Sequence record: MW845759.1
Length of the DNA stretch: 64,000 bases
Direction: 5' to 3' (one strand)
This document shows positions 2-28,207 of this stretch, piece after piece. Below the pieces are notes generated by a model. That model saw only the letters and a list, made by a program, of their open reading frames with translations, searched no databases and had not been told where the DNA came from. Both the position numbers and the translations under genes were made by a program. Positions within the stretch are counted from its first letter, which is position 1, and each line of letters starts with the position of its first letter.

Positions 2-973
2 ACTGAAGCGACACATTACTTGCGGGAAAAACTCCAGCTGGAGAAGACTCGTGAGGAGTGGGCAGAGATTGCACGGGCACAGGGTAATGTCGACACCACA
101 CTGGAAGCACGGCTGGCTGTACAACGTGATGCAGTAAATGAAGCACTGCAATCCAAGTACAATGTCGAAGGTTCTCTCAAGCACGCACAGGCACAACTCG
201 ACAGTCTACTGCGTACCAAAGCAGCAGTAGAGAATTTCAAAGTGTTGGAAGGTCGTTTAGAATCAGCAATGCGTCTGTATTCAAACAACCTTGCGGTCAA
301 AGAAGTCGAGGACTTCCGCGACATGCGCTGGGACCAGTATTCGGTTGCCCGTGAACGCTACCGTTTAATGCAACAGGAGCTGGACAAACTCGCGGAACTT
401 GAGAAAGAGCTGGAGCGGTTATTAAAGCACCAACACACTGCCAAGTTAATGGTCACCAGTTTCTCTCCGGAGAAAGGGGTATTGCGTCGTCACTTCTTTA
501 ACTCGATTGCGCGCGTCACCGAGATGATGTCGAGTTATATTGAACACGTCTGGGCGTACCCGATGCAGGTGCTGCCGTGCGACATGTCAGAAGGGGATTT
601 GGACTACCGTTTCCCGTATCGCCTGAAAGACAATCCAGAACCAGTGTTCGATATCTGCAAAGGGTCAGCGGCACAGCGGGATATCTTTGACTTGACCTTC
701 CGTTTAACGGCGTACCGTTGCCTCGGTCTGAAACAGTATCCGTTGCTGTTAGACGAACCGGGTGCCACCTTCGATGAAGCACACCGTAATGAACTGGTGG
801 ACTTCTTGAAAATGCTGTTAAACTCCGATGAGTTCTCACAAATCATCGTGATTTCTCACAACTCGGAAGTTCACTCTAAACTCGTAGGTGCCGATTATTG
901 CGTACTGGAATCGGAAGGGATTACCCCTCCACCGGTTTATAATCAGAACGTGAAAATAACTTATACCGATTAA
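2..973 (+). CDS. sbcC: SbcC/Rad50-like ABC ATPase, C-terminal part (5' end lies outside the window)
   Basis: Coiled coil, degenerate signature KGSAAQRDIF, Walker B PLLLDEPGATFD, H-loop VISHN; frame is open from base 2. Confidence 0.9.
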   Translation, partial: TEATHYLREKLQLEKTREEWAEIARAQGNVDTTLEARLAVQRDAVNEALQSKYNVEGSLKHAQAQLDSLLRTKAAVENFKVLEGRLESAMRLYSNNLAVKEVEDFRDMRWDQYSVARERYRLMQQELDKLAELEKELERLLKHQHTAKLMVTSFSPEKGVLRRHFFNSIARVTEMMSSYIEHVWAYPMQVLPCDMSEGDLDYRFPYRLKDNPEPVFDICKGSAAQRDIFDLTFRLTAYRCLGLKQYPLLLDEPGATFDEAHRNELVDFLKMLLNSDEFSQIIVISHNSEVHSKLVGADYCVLESEGITPPPVYNQNVKITYTD

Positions 974-13007: not shown

Positions 13008-13810
13008 AGAAAGTCATCAGTGGCGTAATCACTTCGCTCAAAACGTCCATTCGTAACGAATGGGATACGTGGTGGGAGAGTGAATTCAGTGTGGCAACAC
13101 CTGAGCATTATCGTCCGTATGTTGATGGCATCAATGTCTCTGGTCAGTTAGGTATCGAGCAGACGAAAAGTCTGCCGTACTGGACAATGGCTAACGATGC
13201 GGTGCAGGAGTTTCAGGTTCGGCTCTTTGAAGCATTGTTTAAAGAGTACAACCTGTCCGACACGTACGACCATTCGCATTTCATGCATGTGTTGATGGAT
13301 GTGTTCGGTGAGACGTGGGATAACGACCTGCAAGTGCTGCTCGACAAAGTGGACACCAACGACTGGGAACATCGTGATGCGTGTGACACGTTCGTTAAGA
13401 ACATGCTTACAACGTTCATGGATCAGCTCGTGGAAATCATGACCTCGGAATGGTCGGAAGCCTTCTACTTCGGTTTCTTCGAAGAGATGGACGGCATCAA
13501 GGAAAGCTTGCCAGCGTTAGGGATTACGCCGCAAGTCGACCTGCGTGACTTCGCGGCTGATCCGCAATGCCGTATCTGTATTATCGAAAGTGATGACGTG
13601 TCCTACGAATCGATTAAGACGTGGGACGGTTCGCAGGAGGTAATCGAATGGCTCCGTCAGGGGCTGGAGAATGCCCATCTGCAACGAGTCATCTGGCTGG
13701 TTAACGGTCAGGTGGAACTCGACATGGCACACCGTACGTTGAACTCCGGTGACGTCGTTAAGAAATGTCTTTTAAAATTAGGAGCTAACCCAAGTGCAGT
13801 TAATCATTGA
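13004..13810 (+). CDS. Hypothetical acidic protein
   Basis: ATGA coupling; 268 codons. Confidence 0.8.
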   Translation: MKKVISGVITSLKTSIRNEWDTWWESEFSVATPEHYRPYVDGINVSGQLGIEQTKSLPYWTMANDAVQEFQVRLFEALFKEYNLSDTYDHSHFMHVLMDVFGETWDNDLQVLLDKVDTNDWEHRDACDTFVKNMLTTFMDQLVEIMTSEWSEAFYFGFFEEMDGIKESLPALGITPQVDLRDFAADPQCRICIIESDDVSYESIKTWDGSQEVIEWLRQGLENAHLQRVIWLVNGQVELDMAHRTLNSGDVVKKCLLKLGANPSAVNH

Positions 13811-14327
13811 TTTTCGTAACCACGATGTATCCGAGGCGCTGCGCAATCTCAGCAACGGCATGAAGACCAATGTTATGCTTCTGATTGAAGAAGCATTGAG
13901 CATGTCGGAAATCAACCTGTCCGTATCGACGGGTAACGATCATGTGTTTATCAACAACGCTAATTTGGCTGACATTGTAGAGGATGTCATCACCCGCGAA
14001 CTGCAGCGTATTTTCGGACAGGCGGTAACCATTAACACCGGTAATTTCAGCGACGTGAGTGAGTTCCTTGAACTCTGTTCACAACGTTTCGGTGAAATCT
14101 TTAATCGACTGGTTACCGAAGCGCAAGCAACGGAGCTAACCGCGAAGATGTTGGTCGATGGTCAACCCGCGGGCAACTTCAAAGATACCTTAACCAATCT
14201 TATTCCTGCGGAAACGTGGGCTGGTATTGAGAAAGAGTTCGATGAAGGTCGTCAGCAAGCTCTCCGCATTATGCGTACTTCGCTGGAAAGTTTGATGGCA
14301 TCCCTTGAACCGGGGTCAGTCATGTAA
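13794..14327 (+). CDS. Hypothetical protein
   Basis: AGGAG RBS before GTG. Confidence 0.75.
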   Translation: MQLIIDFRNHDVSEALRNLSNGMKTNVMLLIEEALSMSEINLSVSTGNDHVFINNANLADIVEDVITRELQRIFGQAVTINTGNFSDVSEFLELCSQRFGEIFNRLVTEAQATELTAKMLVDGQPAGNFKDTLTNLIPAETWAGIEKEFDEGRQQALRIMRTSLESLMASLEPGSVM

Positions 14328-22970: not shown

Positions 22971-23635
22971 GTGGTTTCAGTCTGAATAGCCTGCTACAAG
23001 GGCTGGAAAAAGACAAGGAGTGGGGTCATCAACAAGCTGCTCAAGAATCAATCTCCACGGAGAAAGAGAAAGAGTATTGCCTGTGGGTGAAGCCGACGTC
23101 GGCCGGGTGGCAGTGGTTGGGTGAGCAACAGAGCACACCGACACTGGATATCCTGATGCCTATTGAAGGCGCACGGCGGCGTTGCCGTATCCGTCCGGAC
23201 GGGGCACAGCTGACGTACAAGCAGCGGGTGAACAACGAGACCGTGGAAGAGAACAGCGATGTCGGTTTTGCGATGGCGTTGTCGTTCTATGCGGATGGGT
23301 TTAACTCGCACCTGTTCCGTCGGGTTCGTCTGGAGGCCAGTCCCGAGCTGATGGGTCAGGGCGCGAAGCATTGGGACATCGATATTTTCCATATCGTGCC
23401 TCAGCATCCTAACCTGCCGGATATTCAGGCGCTGAACGAGCTGTCTGACACCTTACGTCAAACTACCGCGTACGGTGATTTGGTCAAAGTGGAGCTGGAG
23501 GTAGAGAAGTTCTTTACTGACAGTATCCGTGACCTGATTCCGTTTGAAGTGGAAGCGGTGTATTCCTCTCGTCCGAAAGACGAAGAGACGCAAGTGATGC
23601 TTGCGGATTACTGGGATAACGTCACCAGCATTTAA
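22967..23635 (+). CDS. CYTH (triphosphate tunnel) family enzyme, probable head protein
   Basis: EKEKEY, RCRIR, LTYK, VEEN, WDIDIF, VELEVE; N-terminal GLE/AQE/STE sites. Confidence 0.7.
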   Translation: MSGFSLNSLLQGLEKDKEWGHQQAAQESISTEKEKEYCLWVKPTSAGWQWLGEQQSTPTLDILMPIEGARRRCRIRPDGAQLTYKQRVNNETVEENSDVGFAMALSFYADGFNSHLFRRVRLEASPELMGQGAKHWDIDIFHIVPQHPNLPDIQALNELSDTLRQTTAYGDLVKVELEVEKFFTDSIRDLIPFEVEAVYSSRPKDEETQVMLADYWDNVTSI

Positions 23636-23641
23636 TGAGCA

Positions 23642-23674
23642 CCCAACCCTTCGGGGTTGGGGCTTTCTATTTTT
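23642..23674 (+). terminator. Intrinsic terminator, UUCG loop
   Basis: cccaaccc-ttcg-gggttggg followed by a T-rich tail. Confidence 0.75.
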
Positions 23675-23689
23675 ACCTGTGGAGCTTTC

Positions 23690-24058
23690 ATGAAGAAAAT
23701 AAGCTGTAACAATCGGGCTGTGTTGGTTGACGGTAAACCACGCTACGCCCCAAACGTATTAGGACATCTGCATTTCTTTGAAGGGATTACTGAGGCGGTG
23801 ATTATCGCCCCCGAAAACCCAGGCAATCTACTCAGTCCCCCGATGACCGATGCCAGCATCCAGCATGTCAGCTTTATCCGCATTACCGAAGGGGCACGAC
23901 TGGCCCTGCTGAACGATGTGGAAGAACTGCCAACGAACTGGCGCGAATTGACCGTGCTGATTCTCCACCGCCGTAAATACGACGGGGTCGTTATCGATGA
24001 GCTGTTCCGCGTTGAGTCCCGTGACCCTGTTGCGGATGAGGACGACGTGGAAGAGTAA
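23690..24058 (+). CDS. Hypothetical protein
   Basis: GGAG RBS before ATG 23690; acidic end. Confidence 0.7.
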   Translation: MKKISCNNRAVLVDGKPRYAPNVLGHLHFFEGITEAVIIAPENPGNLLSPPMTDASIQHVSFIRITEGARLALLNDVEELPTNWRELTVLILHRRKYDGVVIDELFRVESRDPVADEDDVEE

Positions 24059-24112
24059 TTTTTTAACGTTACACCCGTTAGTTATGTAAACCTTCCTGAG
24101 GCCCCAATTTAA

Positions 24113-24259
24113 ATGCGCAAAAAGTTCTGGCGTTCGGTTCTAACCTTATTAGTTCTCCTGTCGATTATCGGCTACGGTTGTACCCTTGTACAGTCACTAA
24201 TTTGGTCAGGTGTCGTACGAACGTCTAACGCCAATTACTTCCGAGGATACGATGAATAA
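24113..24259 (+). CDS. 48-aa single-TM protein MRKKFWRSVLTLLVLLSIIGYGCTLVQSLIWSGVVRTSNANYFRGYDE (not in ORF track)
   Basis: GAGG upstream; basic N-terminus plus TM; overlaps the next start. Confidence 0.6.
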   Translation: MRKKFWRSVLTLLVLLSIIGYGCTLVQSLIWSGVVRTSNANYFRGYDE

Positions 24260-24710
24260 ATTCGATTTTACTGAAGACCACCGAATGGTACTGAACGGAA
24301 TGACCTCCGAGCCGGTAGCGGAAGAAATCGTTGGCATCTGTGAGCGCCTTCGTGAATTTGCGAAAGACCGCGAATTCAAAATTCTCCTGACCACCAACCC
24401 GTTGGCCCCGTTGCCGAAAGAAGTGGACGATCAGATTCTGATGCCGATGTACGAGCCGATACCGCTGTATGCTGCTGACTTTATCCTGGCCATAGGCAAT
24501 CTGACCAACGACATCGACGGTCACTACGGGTTAGCCTGTGTAAAGGCGCGCGTACCGTCGACTGAAAAGTGGGAAGTGCGTGAAGACGGCCGTGAGCTGT
24601 TGACTGGCCGTGACCTCGTGCTGTCGTACATTCCGGGGGAGAACGAAGACCCGCGCACTTTCGTTACTTACTGGGGAGCCGGAGACAATGCCGAACAAAC
24701 TGAAGATTGA
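24252..24710 (+). CDS. Tandem paralog 1 (possible DUF1874/AcrIII-1-like fold)
   Basis: GAGGA RBS before ATG 24252; colinear motif pattern with the next two ORFs; the fold call is inference. Confidence 0.7.
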   Translation: MNKFDFTEDHRMVLNGMTSEPVAEEIVGICERLREFAKDREFKILLTTNPLAPLPKEVDDQILMPMYEPIPLYAADFILAIGNLTNDIDGHYGLACVKARVPSTEKWEVREDGRELLTGRDLVLSYIPGENEDPRTFVTYWGAGDNAEQTED

Positions 24711-25086
24711 AAACGACCAGATTGTTATCAATGACAAACCCATTGGTAACCTCGGACTGGCTCGTTGGGTACTGGACGAGTTAGGTAGCAAGTTCGAACA
24801 CGATTTCTATTTGACAGTTATCGGTACTCCACCGACGAACGAACACTGGAAAAACCGTCTGCCGGTGATGCGTCAAATCAGCGAAGAGCAATTCGTGACG
24901 CTGTACAAAGCCGCGACTATCCGCGGGTGGATCACCGACCCGGAAGTGGCTGCGCACCTTGCTATGGTCGCGCAAAAGGCTGTCCCGTTTGCACAGGGGC
25001 CTGTCCCGGCCGGTGCAGACGATATGTTGTTGTGGGCTAACCACGACATTGAAAACAAAACCACAACCTATTTTATCGTTTATTAA
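24688..25086 (+). CDS. Tandem paralog 2 (possible DUF1874/AcrIII-1-like fold)
   Basis: GGAG RBS before ATG 24688; QISEEQF..LY, WITDPEVAAHLA, DDMLLW. Confidence 0.7.
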   Translation: MPNKLKIENDQIVINDKPIGNLGLARWVLDELGSKFEHDFYLTVIGTPPTNEHWKNRLPVMRQISEEQFVTLYKAATIRGWITDPEVAAHLAMVAQKAVPFAQGPVPAGADDMLLWANHDIENKTTTYFIVY

Positions 25087-25095
25087 GGAAGCGTC

Positions 25096-25527
25096 ATGGA
25101 GCAGTCAATGCTAAACACCCTCGAGTACAGCGACGAAGACCTGTACGTTAATAACCTGACCATCGTGCTGGACAAACTCGATCCTGAGTACCTCACTGGT
25201 CTGATAAAGCGCTTCCCTGAACCGGTGGCGATTGTGCAGTTGTCGCGTCTGGCCCAACTCCCTGTTGAAGGTGTGGTTGGTCAGCTTGAAGTGAAACCGA
25301 TCGCCTCCTACGAAGCGTCCGGGATTGTGAACTCGTCCAGTGCTTATTCTCTGGTTGATGACCCATCAATCAAGAAAGTCGTCTGCAAAGAGCTCATCGG
25401 TTCCCCGCATGATATGGTGATGGCCGCACCACAGCCTCCTGCAGACTTTGATTACAAGAACGCGTTGTACATTGTCTTTACGGCGACAGACGCCGGAATC
25501 GAATACGCGTTAGCGTATTTTAAATAA
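25096..25527 (+). CDS. Tandem paralog 3 (possible DUF1874/AcrIII-1-like fold)
   Basis: AAGGA RBS; LEVKPIASYEA, SLVDDPSIKKVV, NALYIV. Confidence 0.7.
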   Translation: MEQSMLNTLEYSDEDLYVNNLTIVLDKLDPEYLTGLIKRFPEPVAIVQLSRLAQLPVEGVVGQLEVKPIASYEASGIVNSSSAYSLVDDPSIKKVVCKELIGSPHDMVMAAPQPPADFDYKNALYIVFTATDAGIEYALAYFK

Positions 25528-25533
25528 CACAGT

Positions 25534-25560
25534 GGTGTCTCTTCGGGGACACCGTTTTTA
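25534..25560 (+). terminator. Intrinsic terminator, UUCG loop
   Basis: ggtgtctc-ttcg-gggacacc followed by gttttt. Confidence 0.75.
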
Positions 25561-25584
25561 ATTATTTTTCGTGAGGTACTCATC

Positions 25585-25968
25585 ATGTTGAAGAAACTCC
25601 TGGTCGTCATGTGTTTATCGCTGTTCAGTTTCTCTAGCCACGCGTTGGCGCTCTCGTTTAAAGAAGTGGCAAGTTGGCCTGAGCCCATGCGTCCGCAGTT
25701 TAAAACCGTCGTAGGAATGAACGACAACAAGGTTGCAATTCAGGCCGGTAGCTTTATGCTGATTCGCGCTTATGCTGGGGATGCTTGTCCTGCGGGGCAG
25801 TATTTCTTAGCGAACCTTGAACTGCGTACCGTCACCGCGGTGGAGATTGGCACCTGTGACGAAGAAGAACTTACCTTCGGCGTGAACAAAGCCAAAGGAA
25901 CCACTACCAATAAATCGATTGATGTGTTTAGCCACGGTGACTTGGCTGCTCGTATTCCGGTCTATTGA
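25585..25968 (+). CDS. Secreted/periplasmic protein
   Basis: Signal peptide MLKKLLVVMCLSLFSFSSHALA; two mature Cys (GDACPA, IGTCD); GAGG RBS. Confidence 0.75.
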   Translation: MLKKLLVVMCLSLFSFSSHALALSFKEVASWPEPMRPQFKTVVGMNDNKVAIQAGSFMLIRAYAGDACPAGQYFLANLELRTVTAVEIGTCDEEELTFGVNKAKGTTTNKSIDVFSHGDLAARIPVY

Positions 25969-25983
25969 TAAAAAAATAAAAGG

Positions 25984-26015
25984 TACACCCCCGGTGGGGG
26001 TGTATTCTTTTTTTT
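25984..26015. terminator. Bidirectional terminator
   Basis: tacaccccc-ggt-gggggtgta flanked by A and T runs. Confidence 0.8.
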
Positions 26016-26020
26016 GTTTC

Positions 26021-28207
26021 TTACAGTCGAGATGGGCCGCCCATGAACGCTGCCACGATACGGGCAGGCGGGGTGTCCATTACGGCGTTGGTGATATTAC
26101 TCACTGACGCAGCAGACTTCCAGCTCATCAACCATTTGTTCCAGTTCATGTTCAGCATCTCAATCCCTTTGGTACGCTGATGTAATGACGCACCACCCAA
26201 CACCGCCATAAAGTCTGAGAACTTGTTATCGTCATCAAACACGGACGGGTCGGTTACCAGCGGCATGTGCATTACACGAGACAGGTCTTTAATGGTCACG
26301 CTGATATCGACACTCAACGGGATACCGTCTTTACGCCAACCCAAGTTACCTACCCCGAAGGTCATACTGACGTTGGTCACCATCGCATTACGGAAAGCAA
26401 AGCGACCACGGGAATAACACTCAAGGTAGAACGGGTGGATGTACGACTGTTTACCGGTCGACAGCGGACAAACTGCTGCAATCCAGAACGCGATAGGTAC
26501 GATGATTTCTTGGAACACGTCCAAGTCGTTACCCGACCAAGCACGCAACGGGATGTTAAGCGTCAGGTCATCGCCCGAGGTGTCAGAGGAATCCCACACT
26601 TCCGGGAAGTCAACCACCGACTGACTGTAGAGTGCGGCCAGTCCGGTTAAGTGCAGCGTATCGAGTGCCCCACCTAACGCCGACTTCACCCCCTCAATTG
26701 CCCCATCGACAAAGTCCGCACCGGTTTTCCCGCCGGAGGTATTGACGTCCAAACTACGGGCGGCCGAGGTCATGCTGTTAACTTTGCCAGAGATTTCCGG
26801 TTCTTTGGTGGAGTTTGACCAACTACGCTGTGTGGTGTCACGTCCATCAATGCGCCATGTAACCCACTGTGCGCCGTCTTGCAGCTCAGACAAGGCTTGG
26901 GTACCGATTTGTGTTTTGAGCTTGTTGACGGCCTCTGCAGCGCCATCTACGAAGCTACCAAACAAGTCACCCATGGATTTCCCGCCGGTTTCATCAGCGT
27001 ACTTCGAAATCTCCTCATCGGTTAAGCCACCGGTCGCCAATTTCTCGACGCCACTGGTGGTCATTACCGGTTCAGGCGCGGCACCGTCTGCTGAAGGGGT
27101 CTGCTGCTGCGTGTAGTTCTGGCGCAGCTGATTCAGGGTACCTTCGGCTTCTGCCGCTTTCGCATCGTCAATCCCTAAATAACCGGCGTTGGATTTGTGG
27201 TACAGTTCCAAATCCGCCAGTGAGACTTCGTACTTCTGCGCTGACTCACGCACCTGCTGGGTATAACGGGCATTACGGTAGAAACGTTCCAGCTTAGCTT
27301 CGACGTCTTCCGTGTTACTGCCATCGTTGTAAATCTGCTCCAGCATGCTCGCCTGATAGTTCGCCAAGGTCTGGTAGCGGTTAATCATCTTGTAGATGTC
27401 AAACTCACCACTCGACTTCCAAATGCCCGGCAACATACCGTACAGGTCTTTACGGTCATTGAAGTATTTGTTCTCTGGCTTATCAATCCCCTTCATCTGC
27501 GCTTGCTGGCGTTTGTCATCGTACACGTTCCACTGTCCTAAGGACTGAATAGGGACGAGGCGGCGATACAAGAGCTGGGTGTTGACGATGTTCTGTACCG
27601 CACGCAAGTACAGGTGCATCGTGGGTCGTACGTAGTAATACTTCGACGACTGTTTGTTCAACACCATTTTGATGATGCGTGGGATAATCAGAATCGCTGC
27701 GAACGCAACAGTACCAGTAGCGGCCCAAATAGCTGCCCCCGTCACCCATGACGCGACGGTACGAATGATACGGGTGTAATCACCGGTACGGGCCAGATAC
27801 GCCAAGTTCGAATCGTACATGTTCGCAAAGAACGCGACGACCCCAAGGTACTTCGGCTTACCGTATCGACAGTGAACGTAGAAGGCGTTCTCTTCAATCG
27901 ACTCCTGATAATAGGTGCCCATCGTGTACGAGCCGACTTCCGCTTGTGCTTGAATCTTCTCTTGTTGGTCCCCGCGTGAGTAGTTAAGCGGGTTAGCAAA
28001 AAGGCCACCTACAGAAGGGTCAGCAAAGCGAGTAAACTGCGGTGGCGCATTGAGCGCTTGGTTACCACCCATGGTCGTATCAGATGATGCGAAGTACGCA
28101 GAACTGTACATTCGCAAGTTACGTAACCGGTTGTCCCCCATTTGCGGCGCCAACCCAAACACGGAACGCACCCAAGATTGGTCCGATAATCTTTCTGTGG
28201 TTGCCAT
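26021..28207 (-). CDS. Virion tail/baseplate hub-type protein (phiKZ gp182-like)
   Basis: 728 aa, immediately downstream of the tape-measure/lysozyme gene; GGAG RBS. Confidence 0.7.
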   Translation of the reverse strand: MATTERLSDQSWVRSVFGLAPQMGDNRLRNLRMYSSAYFASSDTTMGGNQALNAPPQFTRFADPSVGGLFANPLNYSRGDQQEKIQAQAEVGSYTMGTYYQESIEENAFYVHCRYGKPKYLGVVAFFANMYDSNLAYLARTGDYTRIIRTVASWVTGAAIWAATGTVAFAAILIIPRIIKMVLNKQSSKYYYVRPTMHLYLRAVQNIVNTQLLYRRLVPIQSLGQWNVYDDKRQQAQMKGIDKPENKYFNDRKDLYGMLPGIWKSSGEFDIYKMINRYQTLANYQASMLEQIYNDGSNTEDVEAKLERFYRNARYTQQVRESAQKYEVSLADLELYHKSNAGYLGIDDAKAAEAEGTLNQLRQNYTQQQTPSADGAAPEPVMTTSGVEKLATGGLTDEEISKYADETGGKSMGDLFGSFVDGAAEAVNKLKTQIGTQALSELQDGAQWVTWRIDGRDTTQRSWSNSTKEPEISGKVNSMTSAARSLDVNTSGGKTGADFVDGAIEGVKSALGGALDTLHLTGLAALYSQSVVDFPEVWDSSDTSGDDLTLNIPLRAWSGNDLDVFQEIIVPIAFWIAAVCPLSTGKQSYIHPFYLECYSRGRFAFRNAMVTNVSMTFGVGNLGWRKDGIPLSVDISVTIKDLSRVMHMPLVTDPSVFDDDNKFSDFMAVLGGASLHQRTKGIEMLNMNWNKWLMSWKSAASVSNITNAVMDTPPARIVAAFMGGPSRL

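Follow-up and report, generated by a model that had tools for sequence, protein, structure and literature searches.

Erwinia phage pEa_SNUABM_38 (MW845759.1, 224,179 bp, genus Derbicusvirus), whose host is the fire-blight bacterium, carries a conserved, translationally coupled cassette of real, constrained genes, in which a gene for a small transmembrane (TM) peptide is followed by genes for three small proteins, called here A, B, and C. Models of A and C predict that both have the fold of the DUF1874 (AcrIII-1/Crn2) family, and B, judged by profile comparison, probably belongs to the same fold family. The three appear to be paralogs that have diverged past sequence recognition. We consider it possible, though somewhat short of probable, that this accessory cassette of DUF1874-fold paralogs and a membrane peptide sequesters or reprocesses nucleotide messengers of host immunity. 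The cassette lies within a 64,000-nucleotide (nt) stretch of the phage genome (the window); positions are given in window numbering, with window base 23600 corresponding to record base 183779.

A sequence-only reading of this region had described three open reading frames (ORFs) of 152, 132, and 143 amino acids along with a small TM peptide, and the ORF listing agrees with that description; the peptide blocks it quoted are each present in the stated protein. The claim that these genes are coupled is borne out by overlaps of 8 nt between TM and A and 23 nt between A and B, and by a gap of 9 nt between B and C, with a Shine-Dalgarno-like AAGGAAG ahead of the ATG of C. Overlaps between cassette genes are retained in the related phages CR5 and Phobos. 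Purifying selection acts on TM, A, B, and C, as well as on the neighboring gene D (ratio of nonsynonymous to synonymous substitution rates (dN/dS), 0.04–0.23 for the cassette genes and 0–0.23 for A, B, C, and D). A evolves fastest, with 59% identity to its counterpart in CR5 and 40% to that in Phobos; C is the slowest. In GenBank, A, B, and C are hypothetical proteins.

AlphaFold2 models were obtained for A (predicted local distance difference test (pLDDT), 62.6; predicted template modeling score, 0.61; alignment of 8 sequences) and C (pLDDT, 77.1; predicted template modeling score, 0.74; alignment of 7 sequences). The order of secondary structural elements is identical in the two models, and equivalent elements are located no more than six residues apart (Table 1). 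The sequence-only reading had proposed that all three proteins resemble DUF1874 proteins such as STIV B116 and AcrIII-1. For A and C, Foldseek searches of the PDB agree, with DUF1874 proteins as the exclusive top matches of both models (probability, 0.72–1.00); for B, it has indirect support from profile links and from probable BFVD matches. The top 12 matches of the A model are Csx1-Crn2 (8y7f and 8y7g), AFV3-109 (2j6b), and SIRV1 gp29/AcrIII-1 (6scf and 2x4i), with expectation values (E) of 2.8e-4 to 3e-2 and target-normalized template modeling scores of 0.53–0.62. Below these come methyltransferases at a probability of <0.6. The top 14 matches of the C model are SIRV1 gp29, AcrIII-1, AFV3-109, Csx1-Crn2, and STIV B116 (2j85) (root mean square deviation, ~4 Å; target-normalized score, 0.53–0.63), after which the probability drops to 0.04.

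In the DUF1874 fold, three helices lie on one face of a mixed sheet of five strands, and AFV3-109 has the topology β1-β2-α1-β3-α2-β4-α3-β5 (PMC1796864). The core order of the A and C models agrees with this topology, with extra strands in addition. A and C, which have no detectable sequence similarity to each other, thus both lead to a single small family of known structures.

A search of BFVD with the A model returned the CR5 ortholog (58% identity) first and then small proteins at a probability of ~1.0. These include three proteins of phage Kwan (133, 165, and 136 amino acids), one each of phiEaH2 (145 amino acids) and Asesino (178 amino acids), several unnamed entries, and a protein of an archaeal rudivirus, Stygiolobus rod-shaped virus (148 amino acids). 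Unnamed entries of 132 and 139 amino acids are probably Phobos gp217 (the B ortholog) and CR5_204 (the C ortholog), an unconfirmed assignment made from length and accession series. The 165-amino acid Kwan entry is KWAN_262, as confirmed by its accession, and is the ortholog of gp262 of phage Wellington. It occupies the position of A in Kwan and Wellington, which carry only a gene pair at the syntenic site: gp262, which is A-like by fold, and gp263, which is B-like by sequence and a distant homolog of B (30% identity). In Wellington, gp262 is directly upstream of gp263, and the pair precedes a gene for a ~730-amino acid virion protein and a tail-fiber gene.

At the level of sequence, A, B, and C are far apart. 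Pairwise BLASTP gave no match for any pair, hidden Markov models (HMMs) of the three families gave no cross-matches among the 445 ORFs of the window, and the proteins match three separate PHROGs of unknown function. The colinear blocks by which the sequence-only reading had related the three thus went undetected in BLASTP and HMM comparisons, but they fall on equivalent elements of the A and C models. In initial profile-profile runs, A-B (P 0.003) and B-C (P 0.01) aligned weakly and colinearly at the N-terminus. These were calibrated on 26 three-phage families (window, CR5, and Phobos) with all 325 pairs compared. The best unrelated pair reached P 0.003, and A-B and B-C, ranking 17th and 13th, were not above the background of these 325 pairs.

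Larger profiles fared better. With hhalign, A aligned to the family of B and Wellington gp263 (P 2.3e-4, 78 colinear columns), B to the Wellington/Kwan gp262 family (P 3.2e-4, 78 columns), and B to C (P 2.3e-3, 48 columns), with all three alignments colinear and starting at the N-terminus; nothing was found between A and C. The best decoy, among 115 comparisons of the large profiles with 23 families, had P 0.0075. Since it is the larger profiles alone that exceed all decoys, the sequence evidence for paralogy of A, B, and C is weak but above background, with B as its hub. The probable membership of B in the fold family follows from its weak colinear profile matches to A, C, and the gp262 family, which exceed every decoy.

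An exhaustive profile search that covered 1.84 billion proteins, run with B, recovered one true relative and a spurious repeat protein (P0020). Sequence matches in the PDB to SAKe/Kelch, antibody, gephyrin, and pilus-chaperone proteins were set aside as chance or repeat artifacts. Residues 76–109 of A, a 33-residue stretch, match each of the six near-identical blades of designed SAKe proteins, and the E-value of 1e-12 for A is misleading because the score is summed over these six repeated blades. A Kelch-type β-propeller was rejected for A, as the match vanishes with the family profile and the A model is α/β.

In AcrIII-1, which is a dimer, cyclic tetra-adenylate is buried at the interface and contacted by N8, S11, N13, S49, T50, R66, Q81, and R85 along with a lid loop (residues 82–94) (bioRxiv 10.1101/778746). 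His47 (in SIRV1 gp29), the general acid, is conserved without exception, and its substitution (H47A) reduces catalysis >2500-fold (bioRxiv 10.1101/778746). The loops that follow strands line the dimer cradle in DUF1874 proteins (bioRxiv 10.1101/778746; PMC1796864). Loss of the catalytic histidine from all three cassette proteins had been claimed earlier. This holds for A and B, as no invariant histidine occurs at any position in the A family (8 sequences) or the B family (5–7 sequences). C keeps one invariant histidine, H105, which is located about three quarters along the chain, while H47 is ~40% along a 114-amino acid protein. From the family alignments, the DUF1874 catalytic histidine is not conserved in A and B and is putatively missing from C as well, where H105 lies late in the chain.

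Each family has instead its own invariant polar residues. Those of A cluster in loops after strands (TTNPL at 47–51; N86, D87, D89, G90, Y92, and G93), and those of C occur at 72–82 and 93–120. All three proteins are acidic (isoelectric point (pI), 4.35–5.5), which argues against an older idea of DNA binding for the DUF1874 fold.

The sole motif common to A, B, and C is N-terminal; in it, acidic or amide residues precede a hydrophobic-x-hydrophobic-Asn-Gly/Asp/Asn turn. It is also present in Wellington gp262 and gp263 and in the product of U, the gene preceding the cassette. A pattern written for the motif post hoc matches exactly four adjacent genes (U, A, B, and C) among 70 window ORFs. The N-terminal segment has pLDDT values below 50 in both the A and C models and is the most conserved part of C. 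The AFV3-109 dimer is formed through β2-β2 pairing and the β1-β2 loop, with the N-terminal ~20 residues making contact (PMC1796864). A conserved N-terminal segment with low pLDDT fits an interface element of this kind, as far as the models can be taken.

These observations suggest how the cassette might act. The phage nucleus shields DNA, and defenses that signal in the cytoplasm stay an open flank. The cassette would be an accessory, co-transcribed, and coupled unit of a Chimalliviridae-type jumbo phage, made up of the membrane peptide and three paralogs, or possibly four with U. The paralogs may dimerize through their N-terminal strands, as DUF1874 proteins do, since this is the only segment with a motif common to all three and it is left unplaced by the monomer models. 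The dimers could then hold a nucleotide-derived messenger within their intersubunit cradle. Lacking the general-acid histidine, they would most likely not cleave cyclic tetra-adenylate as AcrIII-1 does but sequester this messenger or process it by other chemistry. The outcome would be a dampening of the host immune signals that act beyond the phage nucleus, in the cytoplasm. The conserved loop residues differ among A, B, and C, which suggests that their ligands differ or that they work as obligate hetero-pairs. A more specific form of the proposal is a decoy array of multiple specificities, in which three or four histidine-less paralogs form homo- and heterodimers through their N-terminal strands and jointly sequester several messengers, for example cyclic tri- and dinucleotides of the type used by the cyclic oligonucleotide-based antiphage signaling system (CBASS); so specific an arrangement seems to us unlikely.

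Several points weigh against a messenger-directed cassette of DUF1874-fold proteins. Confidence in the models is moderate, as seen in the pLDDT of A, the underlying alignments are shallow (7–8 sequences), and the Foldseek E-values are modest (1e-2 to 3e-4). Pfam gave nothing at E ≤ 10 for A, B, or C, DUF1874 included; NCBIfam gave no match for the three; and no DUF1874 chain came up when PDB sequences were searched with A, B, and C by phmmer and by profile. The absence of an invariant histidine from A and B belongs here as well. To our knowledge, the known hosts, Erwinia, Cronobacter, and Salmonella, mostly lack type III CRISPR systems, which makes the classic ligand, cyclic tetra-adenylate, unlikely. 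Lastly, SIRV2 gp37, a true DUF1874 protein with middle/late expression, binds and inhibits a host lysine methyltransferase, and it has no anti-CRISPR effect in native infection (bioRxiv 10.1101/2023.01.10.523387). The DUF1874 fold therefore does not fix function.

The behavior of SIRV2 gp37 leads directly to another explanation, in which the fold is the same and the job different. A, B, and C would be small acidic proteins that bind proteins of the host or the phage, for instance as inhibitors of a host enzyme, with no messenger involved. Such a role accords with the strong acidity of the proteins, the missing catalytic histidine, and conserved residues that differ family by family, in addition to the precedent of a DUF1874 protein that inhibits a methyltransferase and has no native anti-CRISPR effect. 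The invariant polar residues of A, however, are found in post-strand loops, as a small-molecule pocket predicts, nor is any partner protein known; an arms race over ligands would also fit the rapid divergence and the expansion in tandem. We regard protein binding as rather unlikely, though the most serious of the alternatives. Retained catalysis is distinctly unlikely. The proteins would here still be ring nucleases or phosphodiesterases that employ other catalytic residues, such as His105 of C or the acidic and hydroxyl residues of A, on messengers other than cyclic tetra-adenylate. They have their predicted fold in common with a very fast ring nuclease, C retains its one invariant histidine, and A retains invariant Thr, Asn, and Asp clusters. 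But the >2500-fold loss of catalysis in AcrIII-1 without its conserved histidine speaks against this, as does the lack of any invariant histidine in A and B, and there is no evidence of metal-binding motifs.

It is also conceivable that the fold match is an artifact of moderate models, and that A, B, and C are unrelated ORFans with, for example, a role in assembly or a membrane-linked role together with TM and D. The lack of significant pairwise similarity, the ranks of A-B (17th) and B-C (13th) among 325 pairs of three-sequence profiles, and the modest Foldseek E-values would all be expected from unrelated proteins, and the setting could suit an assembly role, with structural genes as minus-strand neighbors and virion and tail-fiber genes nearby. 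Against this, two independent models built from unrelated alignments return the same exclusive list of DUF1874 proteins, followed by a sharp drop, and their secondary structure order is equal. Larger profiles also exceed all decoys, and none of A, B, and C is annotated as a virion protein in related phages. An artifact of this sort is, in our estimation, very unlikely, and a cassette directed at nucleotide messengers stays our preferred, if tentative, explanation.

Table 1. Features of the cassette and its surroundings (window positions) and secondary structural elements of the A and C models (residue numbers).
Feature	Position	Strand	Basis
Terminator-like hairpin with TTCG loop, closing the preceding gene block	23642..23661	+	Scan (8 pairs, 6 G-C)
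Gene U, 122 aa, acidic	23690..24058	+	Annotated coding sequence
AT-rich intergenic region with conserved block, promoter-like	24059..24112	+	Alignment of five phages
Membrane peptide gene (TM), 48 aa	24113..24259	+	ORF; tblastn; dN/dS; hydropathy
Gene A, 152 aa from ATG, pI 4.4, phrog_22250	24252..24710	+	ORF; AlphaFold2; Foldseek; BFVD
Gene B, 132 aa, phrog_9256	24688..25086	+	ORF; hhalign; homolog Wellington gp263
Gene C, 143 aa, pI 4.35, phrog_26547	25096..25527	+	ORF; AlphaFold2; Foldseek; family alignment
Intrinsic-terminator-like hairpin and T-run, end of TM-A-B-C unit	25531..25566	+	Scan; five-phage alignment
Gene D, 127 aa, signal peptide, phrog_5248	25585..25968	+	ORF; PHROG match
Hairpin after D, G+C-rich, bidirectional	25982-26006		Scan
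177-aa protein, phrog_8379, unknown function	13794-14327	+	Best decoy match of B profile
Helix	A 24-37; C 30-39		AlphaFold2 models
Strand	A 42-47; C 45-49		AlphaFold2 models
Strand	A 61-69; C 64-69		AlphaFold2 models
Helix	A 72-81; C 71-81		AlphaFold2 models
Strand	A 84-86; C 82-85		AlphaFold2 models
Helix	A 91-100; C 90-101		AlphaFold2 models
Strand	A 121-127; C 123-131		AlphaFold2 models
Strand	A 135-143; C 134-142		AlphaFold2 models

The TM-A-B-C unit is bounded by sequence elements of differing clarity. The sequence-only reading had placed a UUCG terminator at its end, and the scan found a TTCG hairpin there; the hairpin proper (25531–25556) has an 8-bp core stem and a TTCG loop and is followed by a T-run. 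Five phages, Phobos among them, share an unchanged stem and loop, while the flanks vary. The two hairpins that flank the region (23642–23661 and 25531–25556) both carry the TTCG tetraloop. At the other end, the proposed AT-rich, promoter-like start of the unit is indeed AT-rich and partly conserved, with a block kept in four of the five phages. No σ70-like site was found by a scan of the plus strand of this stretch (24059–24112), and the conserved block has no second copy within the window, so that the promoter part of the proposal stays putative. As a recurring promoter motif the block was rejected, since it does not recur in the window.

The 48-amino acid TM ORF is left unannotated in the GenBank records of pEa_SNUABM_38, Derbicus, CR5, and Phobos. 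By tblastn, the peptide is 58–94% identical in five relatives (Derbicus, CR5, Phobos, and ~224-kb contigs of Salmonella assemblies). It has a basic N-terminus and a single strongly hydrophobic helix (best 19-residue Kyte-Doolittle mean of 2.20, from residue 8). Because the ORF is conserved, has a dN/dS of 0.15–0.21, and encodes these features, it is to be regarded, on sequence grounds, as a real gene for a small membrane protein. D, which follows the terminator-like hairpin, was treated as a neighbor and not as a member of the TM-A-B-C unit. It is conserved, has a clear signal peptide (best 19-residue Kyte-Doolittle mean of 2.02, from residue 5), and matches a PHROG of unknown function (phrog_5248). 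The hairpin after D (25982–26006) also serves a convergent gene for a 728-amino acid virion protein.

U is possibly a fourth, very diverged paralog, as its N-terminal motif would suggest. The profile comparison of U with the family by hhalign was not significant, and the motif pattern is post hoc. In CR5 and Phobos, U has either been replaced or diverged to an extreme degree. Its positional counterparts there, CR5_201 (L003:2626-3009) and Phobos gp215 (L004:2489-2857), are barely alignable with U or with each other, and the motif is present in them. Elsewhere in the window, the protein that gave the best decoy match of the B profile (P 0.0075) aligns through an Asn-rich strand-turn motif and then a helix. 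Because the alignment runs through the same N-terminal motif, this protein is a possible remote member of the cassette's fold family.

In Wellington, the gp262-gp263 pair (L005 1596-3881) comes directly after a gene for a 460-amino acid protein, gp261, named by its depositors a MazG-type nucleotide pyrophosphohydrolase. Pfam support for MazG in this protein is weak (E 0.027). The N-terminus of gp261 was considered as a fused family member and found no support, and the 400-amino acid protein upstream in the window has no homology to gp261.

Over the region at 23600–26100, identity is 100% to pEa_SNUABM_38, 93.7% to both Derbicus and EarlPhillipIV, and 77.6% to the Cronobacter phage CR5. Genes for a split RNA polymerase β-subunit, typical of phiKZ-like phages, are present in the window. 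Phages Derbicus, CR5, Phobos, Wellington, phiEaH2, and Asesino are included in the supplementary phage lists of a core-genome study of Chimalliviridae, a family of chimallin-encoding, nucleus-forming phages (PMC10299810). As these relatives of pEa_SNUABM_38 are listed among chimallin-encoding phages, a nucleus-forming context is by analogy reasonable for pEa_SNUABM_38 too, in keeping with what the sequence-only reading had assumed.

At the level of sequence, A, B, and C are found only in Derbicus-type phages and in ~224-kb contigs of Salmonella and E. coli assemblies, and a scan of IMG/VR gave three known isolates and nothing else. They were not found in the Chimalliviridae core-gene tables searched, which makes them accessory genes. 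The minus-strand neighbors of the cassette are structural genes. Near-identical CR5-like contigs of ~223–225 kb occur in dozens of Salmonella enterica assemblies and some E. coli assemblies, which fits a report that virulent jumbo phages persist in bacterial isolates (bioRxiv 10.1101/2024.12.31.630880).

Among the closest known counterparts of the cassette are the gp262-gp263 genes of Wellington and Kwan, along with the phiEaH2 and Asesino proteins. gp263 is a homolog of B, KWAN_262 is a fold match to A, and the position is the same. The Wellington/Kwan locus differs in having two genes and lacking the TM gene, C, and D, and its products are hypothetical and unstudied. The phage sponges Tad1, Tad2, Acb2, and Acb4 would be alike in proposed action, as small oligomeric proteins that bind messengers uncleaved, and they too are small and encoded by accessory genes; their folds are unrelated. 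None of the four is among the listed top 50 PDB matches of the A or C models, and Pfam, PHROGs, and NCBIfam gave no match to their families.

AcrIII-1/Crn2 proteins were compared through SIRV1 gp29, AFV3-109, STIV B116, and Marinitoga Csx1-Crn2. The likeness lies in the predicted fold of A and C, for which these are the only high-probability PDB matches, in the core order of strands and helices in the two models, and in the character of the genes, which are small, virus-encoded, and accessory in both groups. The differences are several. Sequence and HMM searches found no similarity of A, B, and C to DUF1874; the three are 20–40 residues longer, with extra strands, and A and B lack the catalytic histidine. 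The cassette has three or four tandem diverged copies as compared with a single gene, and it occurs in a nucleus-forming jumbo phage of Enterobacterales as opposed to archaeal viruses and type III CRISPR loci. The literature searches turned up no paper that connects jumbo, Chimalliviridae, or Erwinia phages to AcrIII-1/Crn2 or DUF1874. A profile-HMM survey identified AcrIII-1 in 36 of 28,114 phage genomes (PMC12409355). A, B, and C are invisible to a survey of this kind, and the family would therefore, if the fold is real, be much wider than such searches show.

What is new here, to the extent that the models hold, is a known fold without sequence membership and without the catalytic histidine, expanded in tandem and in a new host setting. 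If A, B, and C truly have the DUF1874 fold, then the family extends into Chimalliviridae. A tandem expansion lacking the histidine, in hosts that for the most part have no type III CRISPR, would indicate new ligands or a new, non-catalytic use of the fold. These small proteins, from phages of the Derbicus, Wellington, phiEaH2, and Asesino types, would then form a concrete set for studying how nucleus-forming phages handle nucleotide-signaling immunity. The cassette is a good candidate for a new means by which phages would silence host alarm signals. Should the decoy array prove true, its proteins would be the first non-catalytic members of the DUF1874 fold and the first messenger-directed counter-defense described in nucleus-forming phages, belonging to a family that has expanded across Erwinia jumbo phages while hidden from sequence searches.

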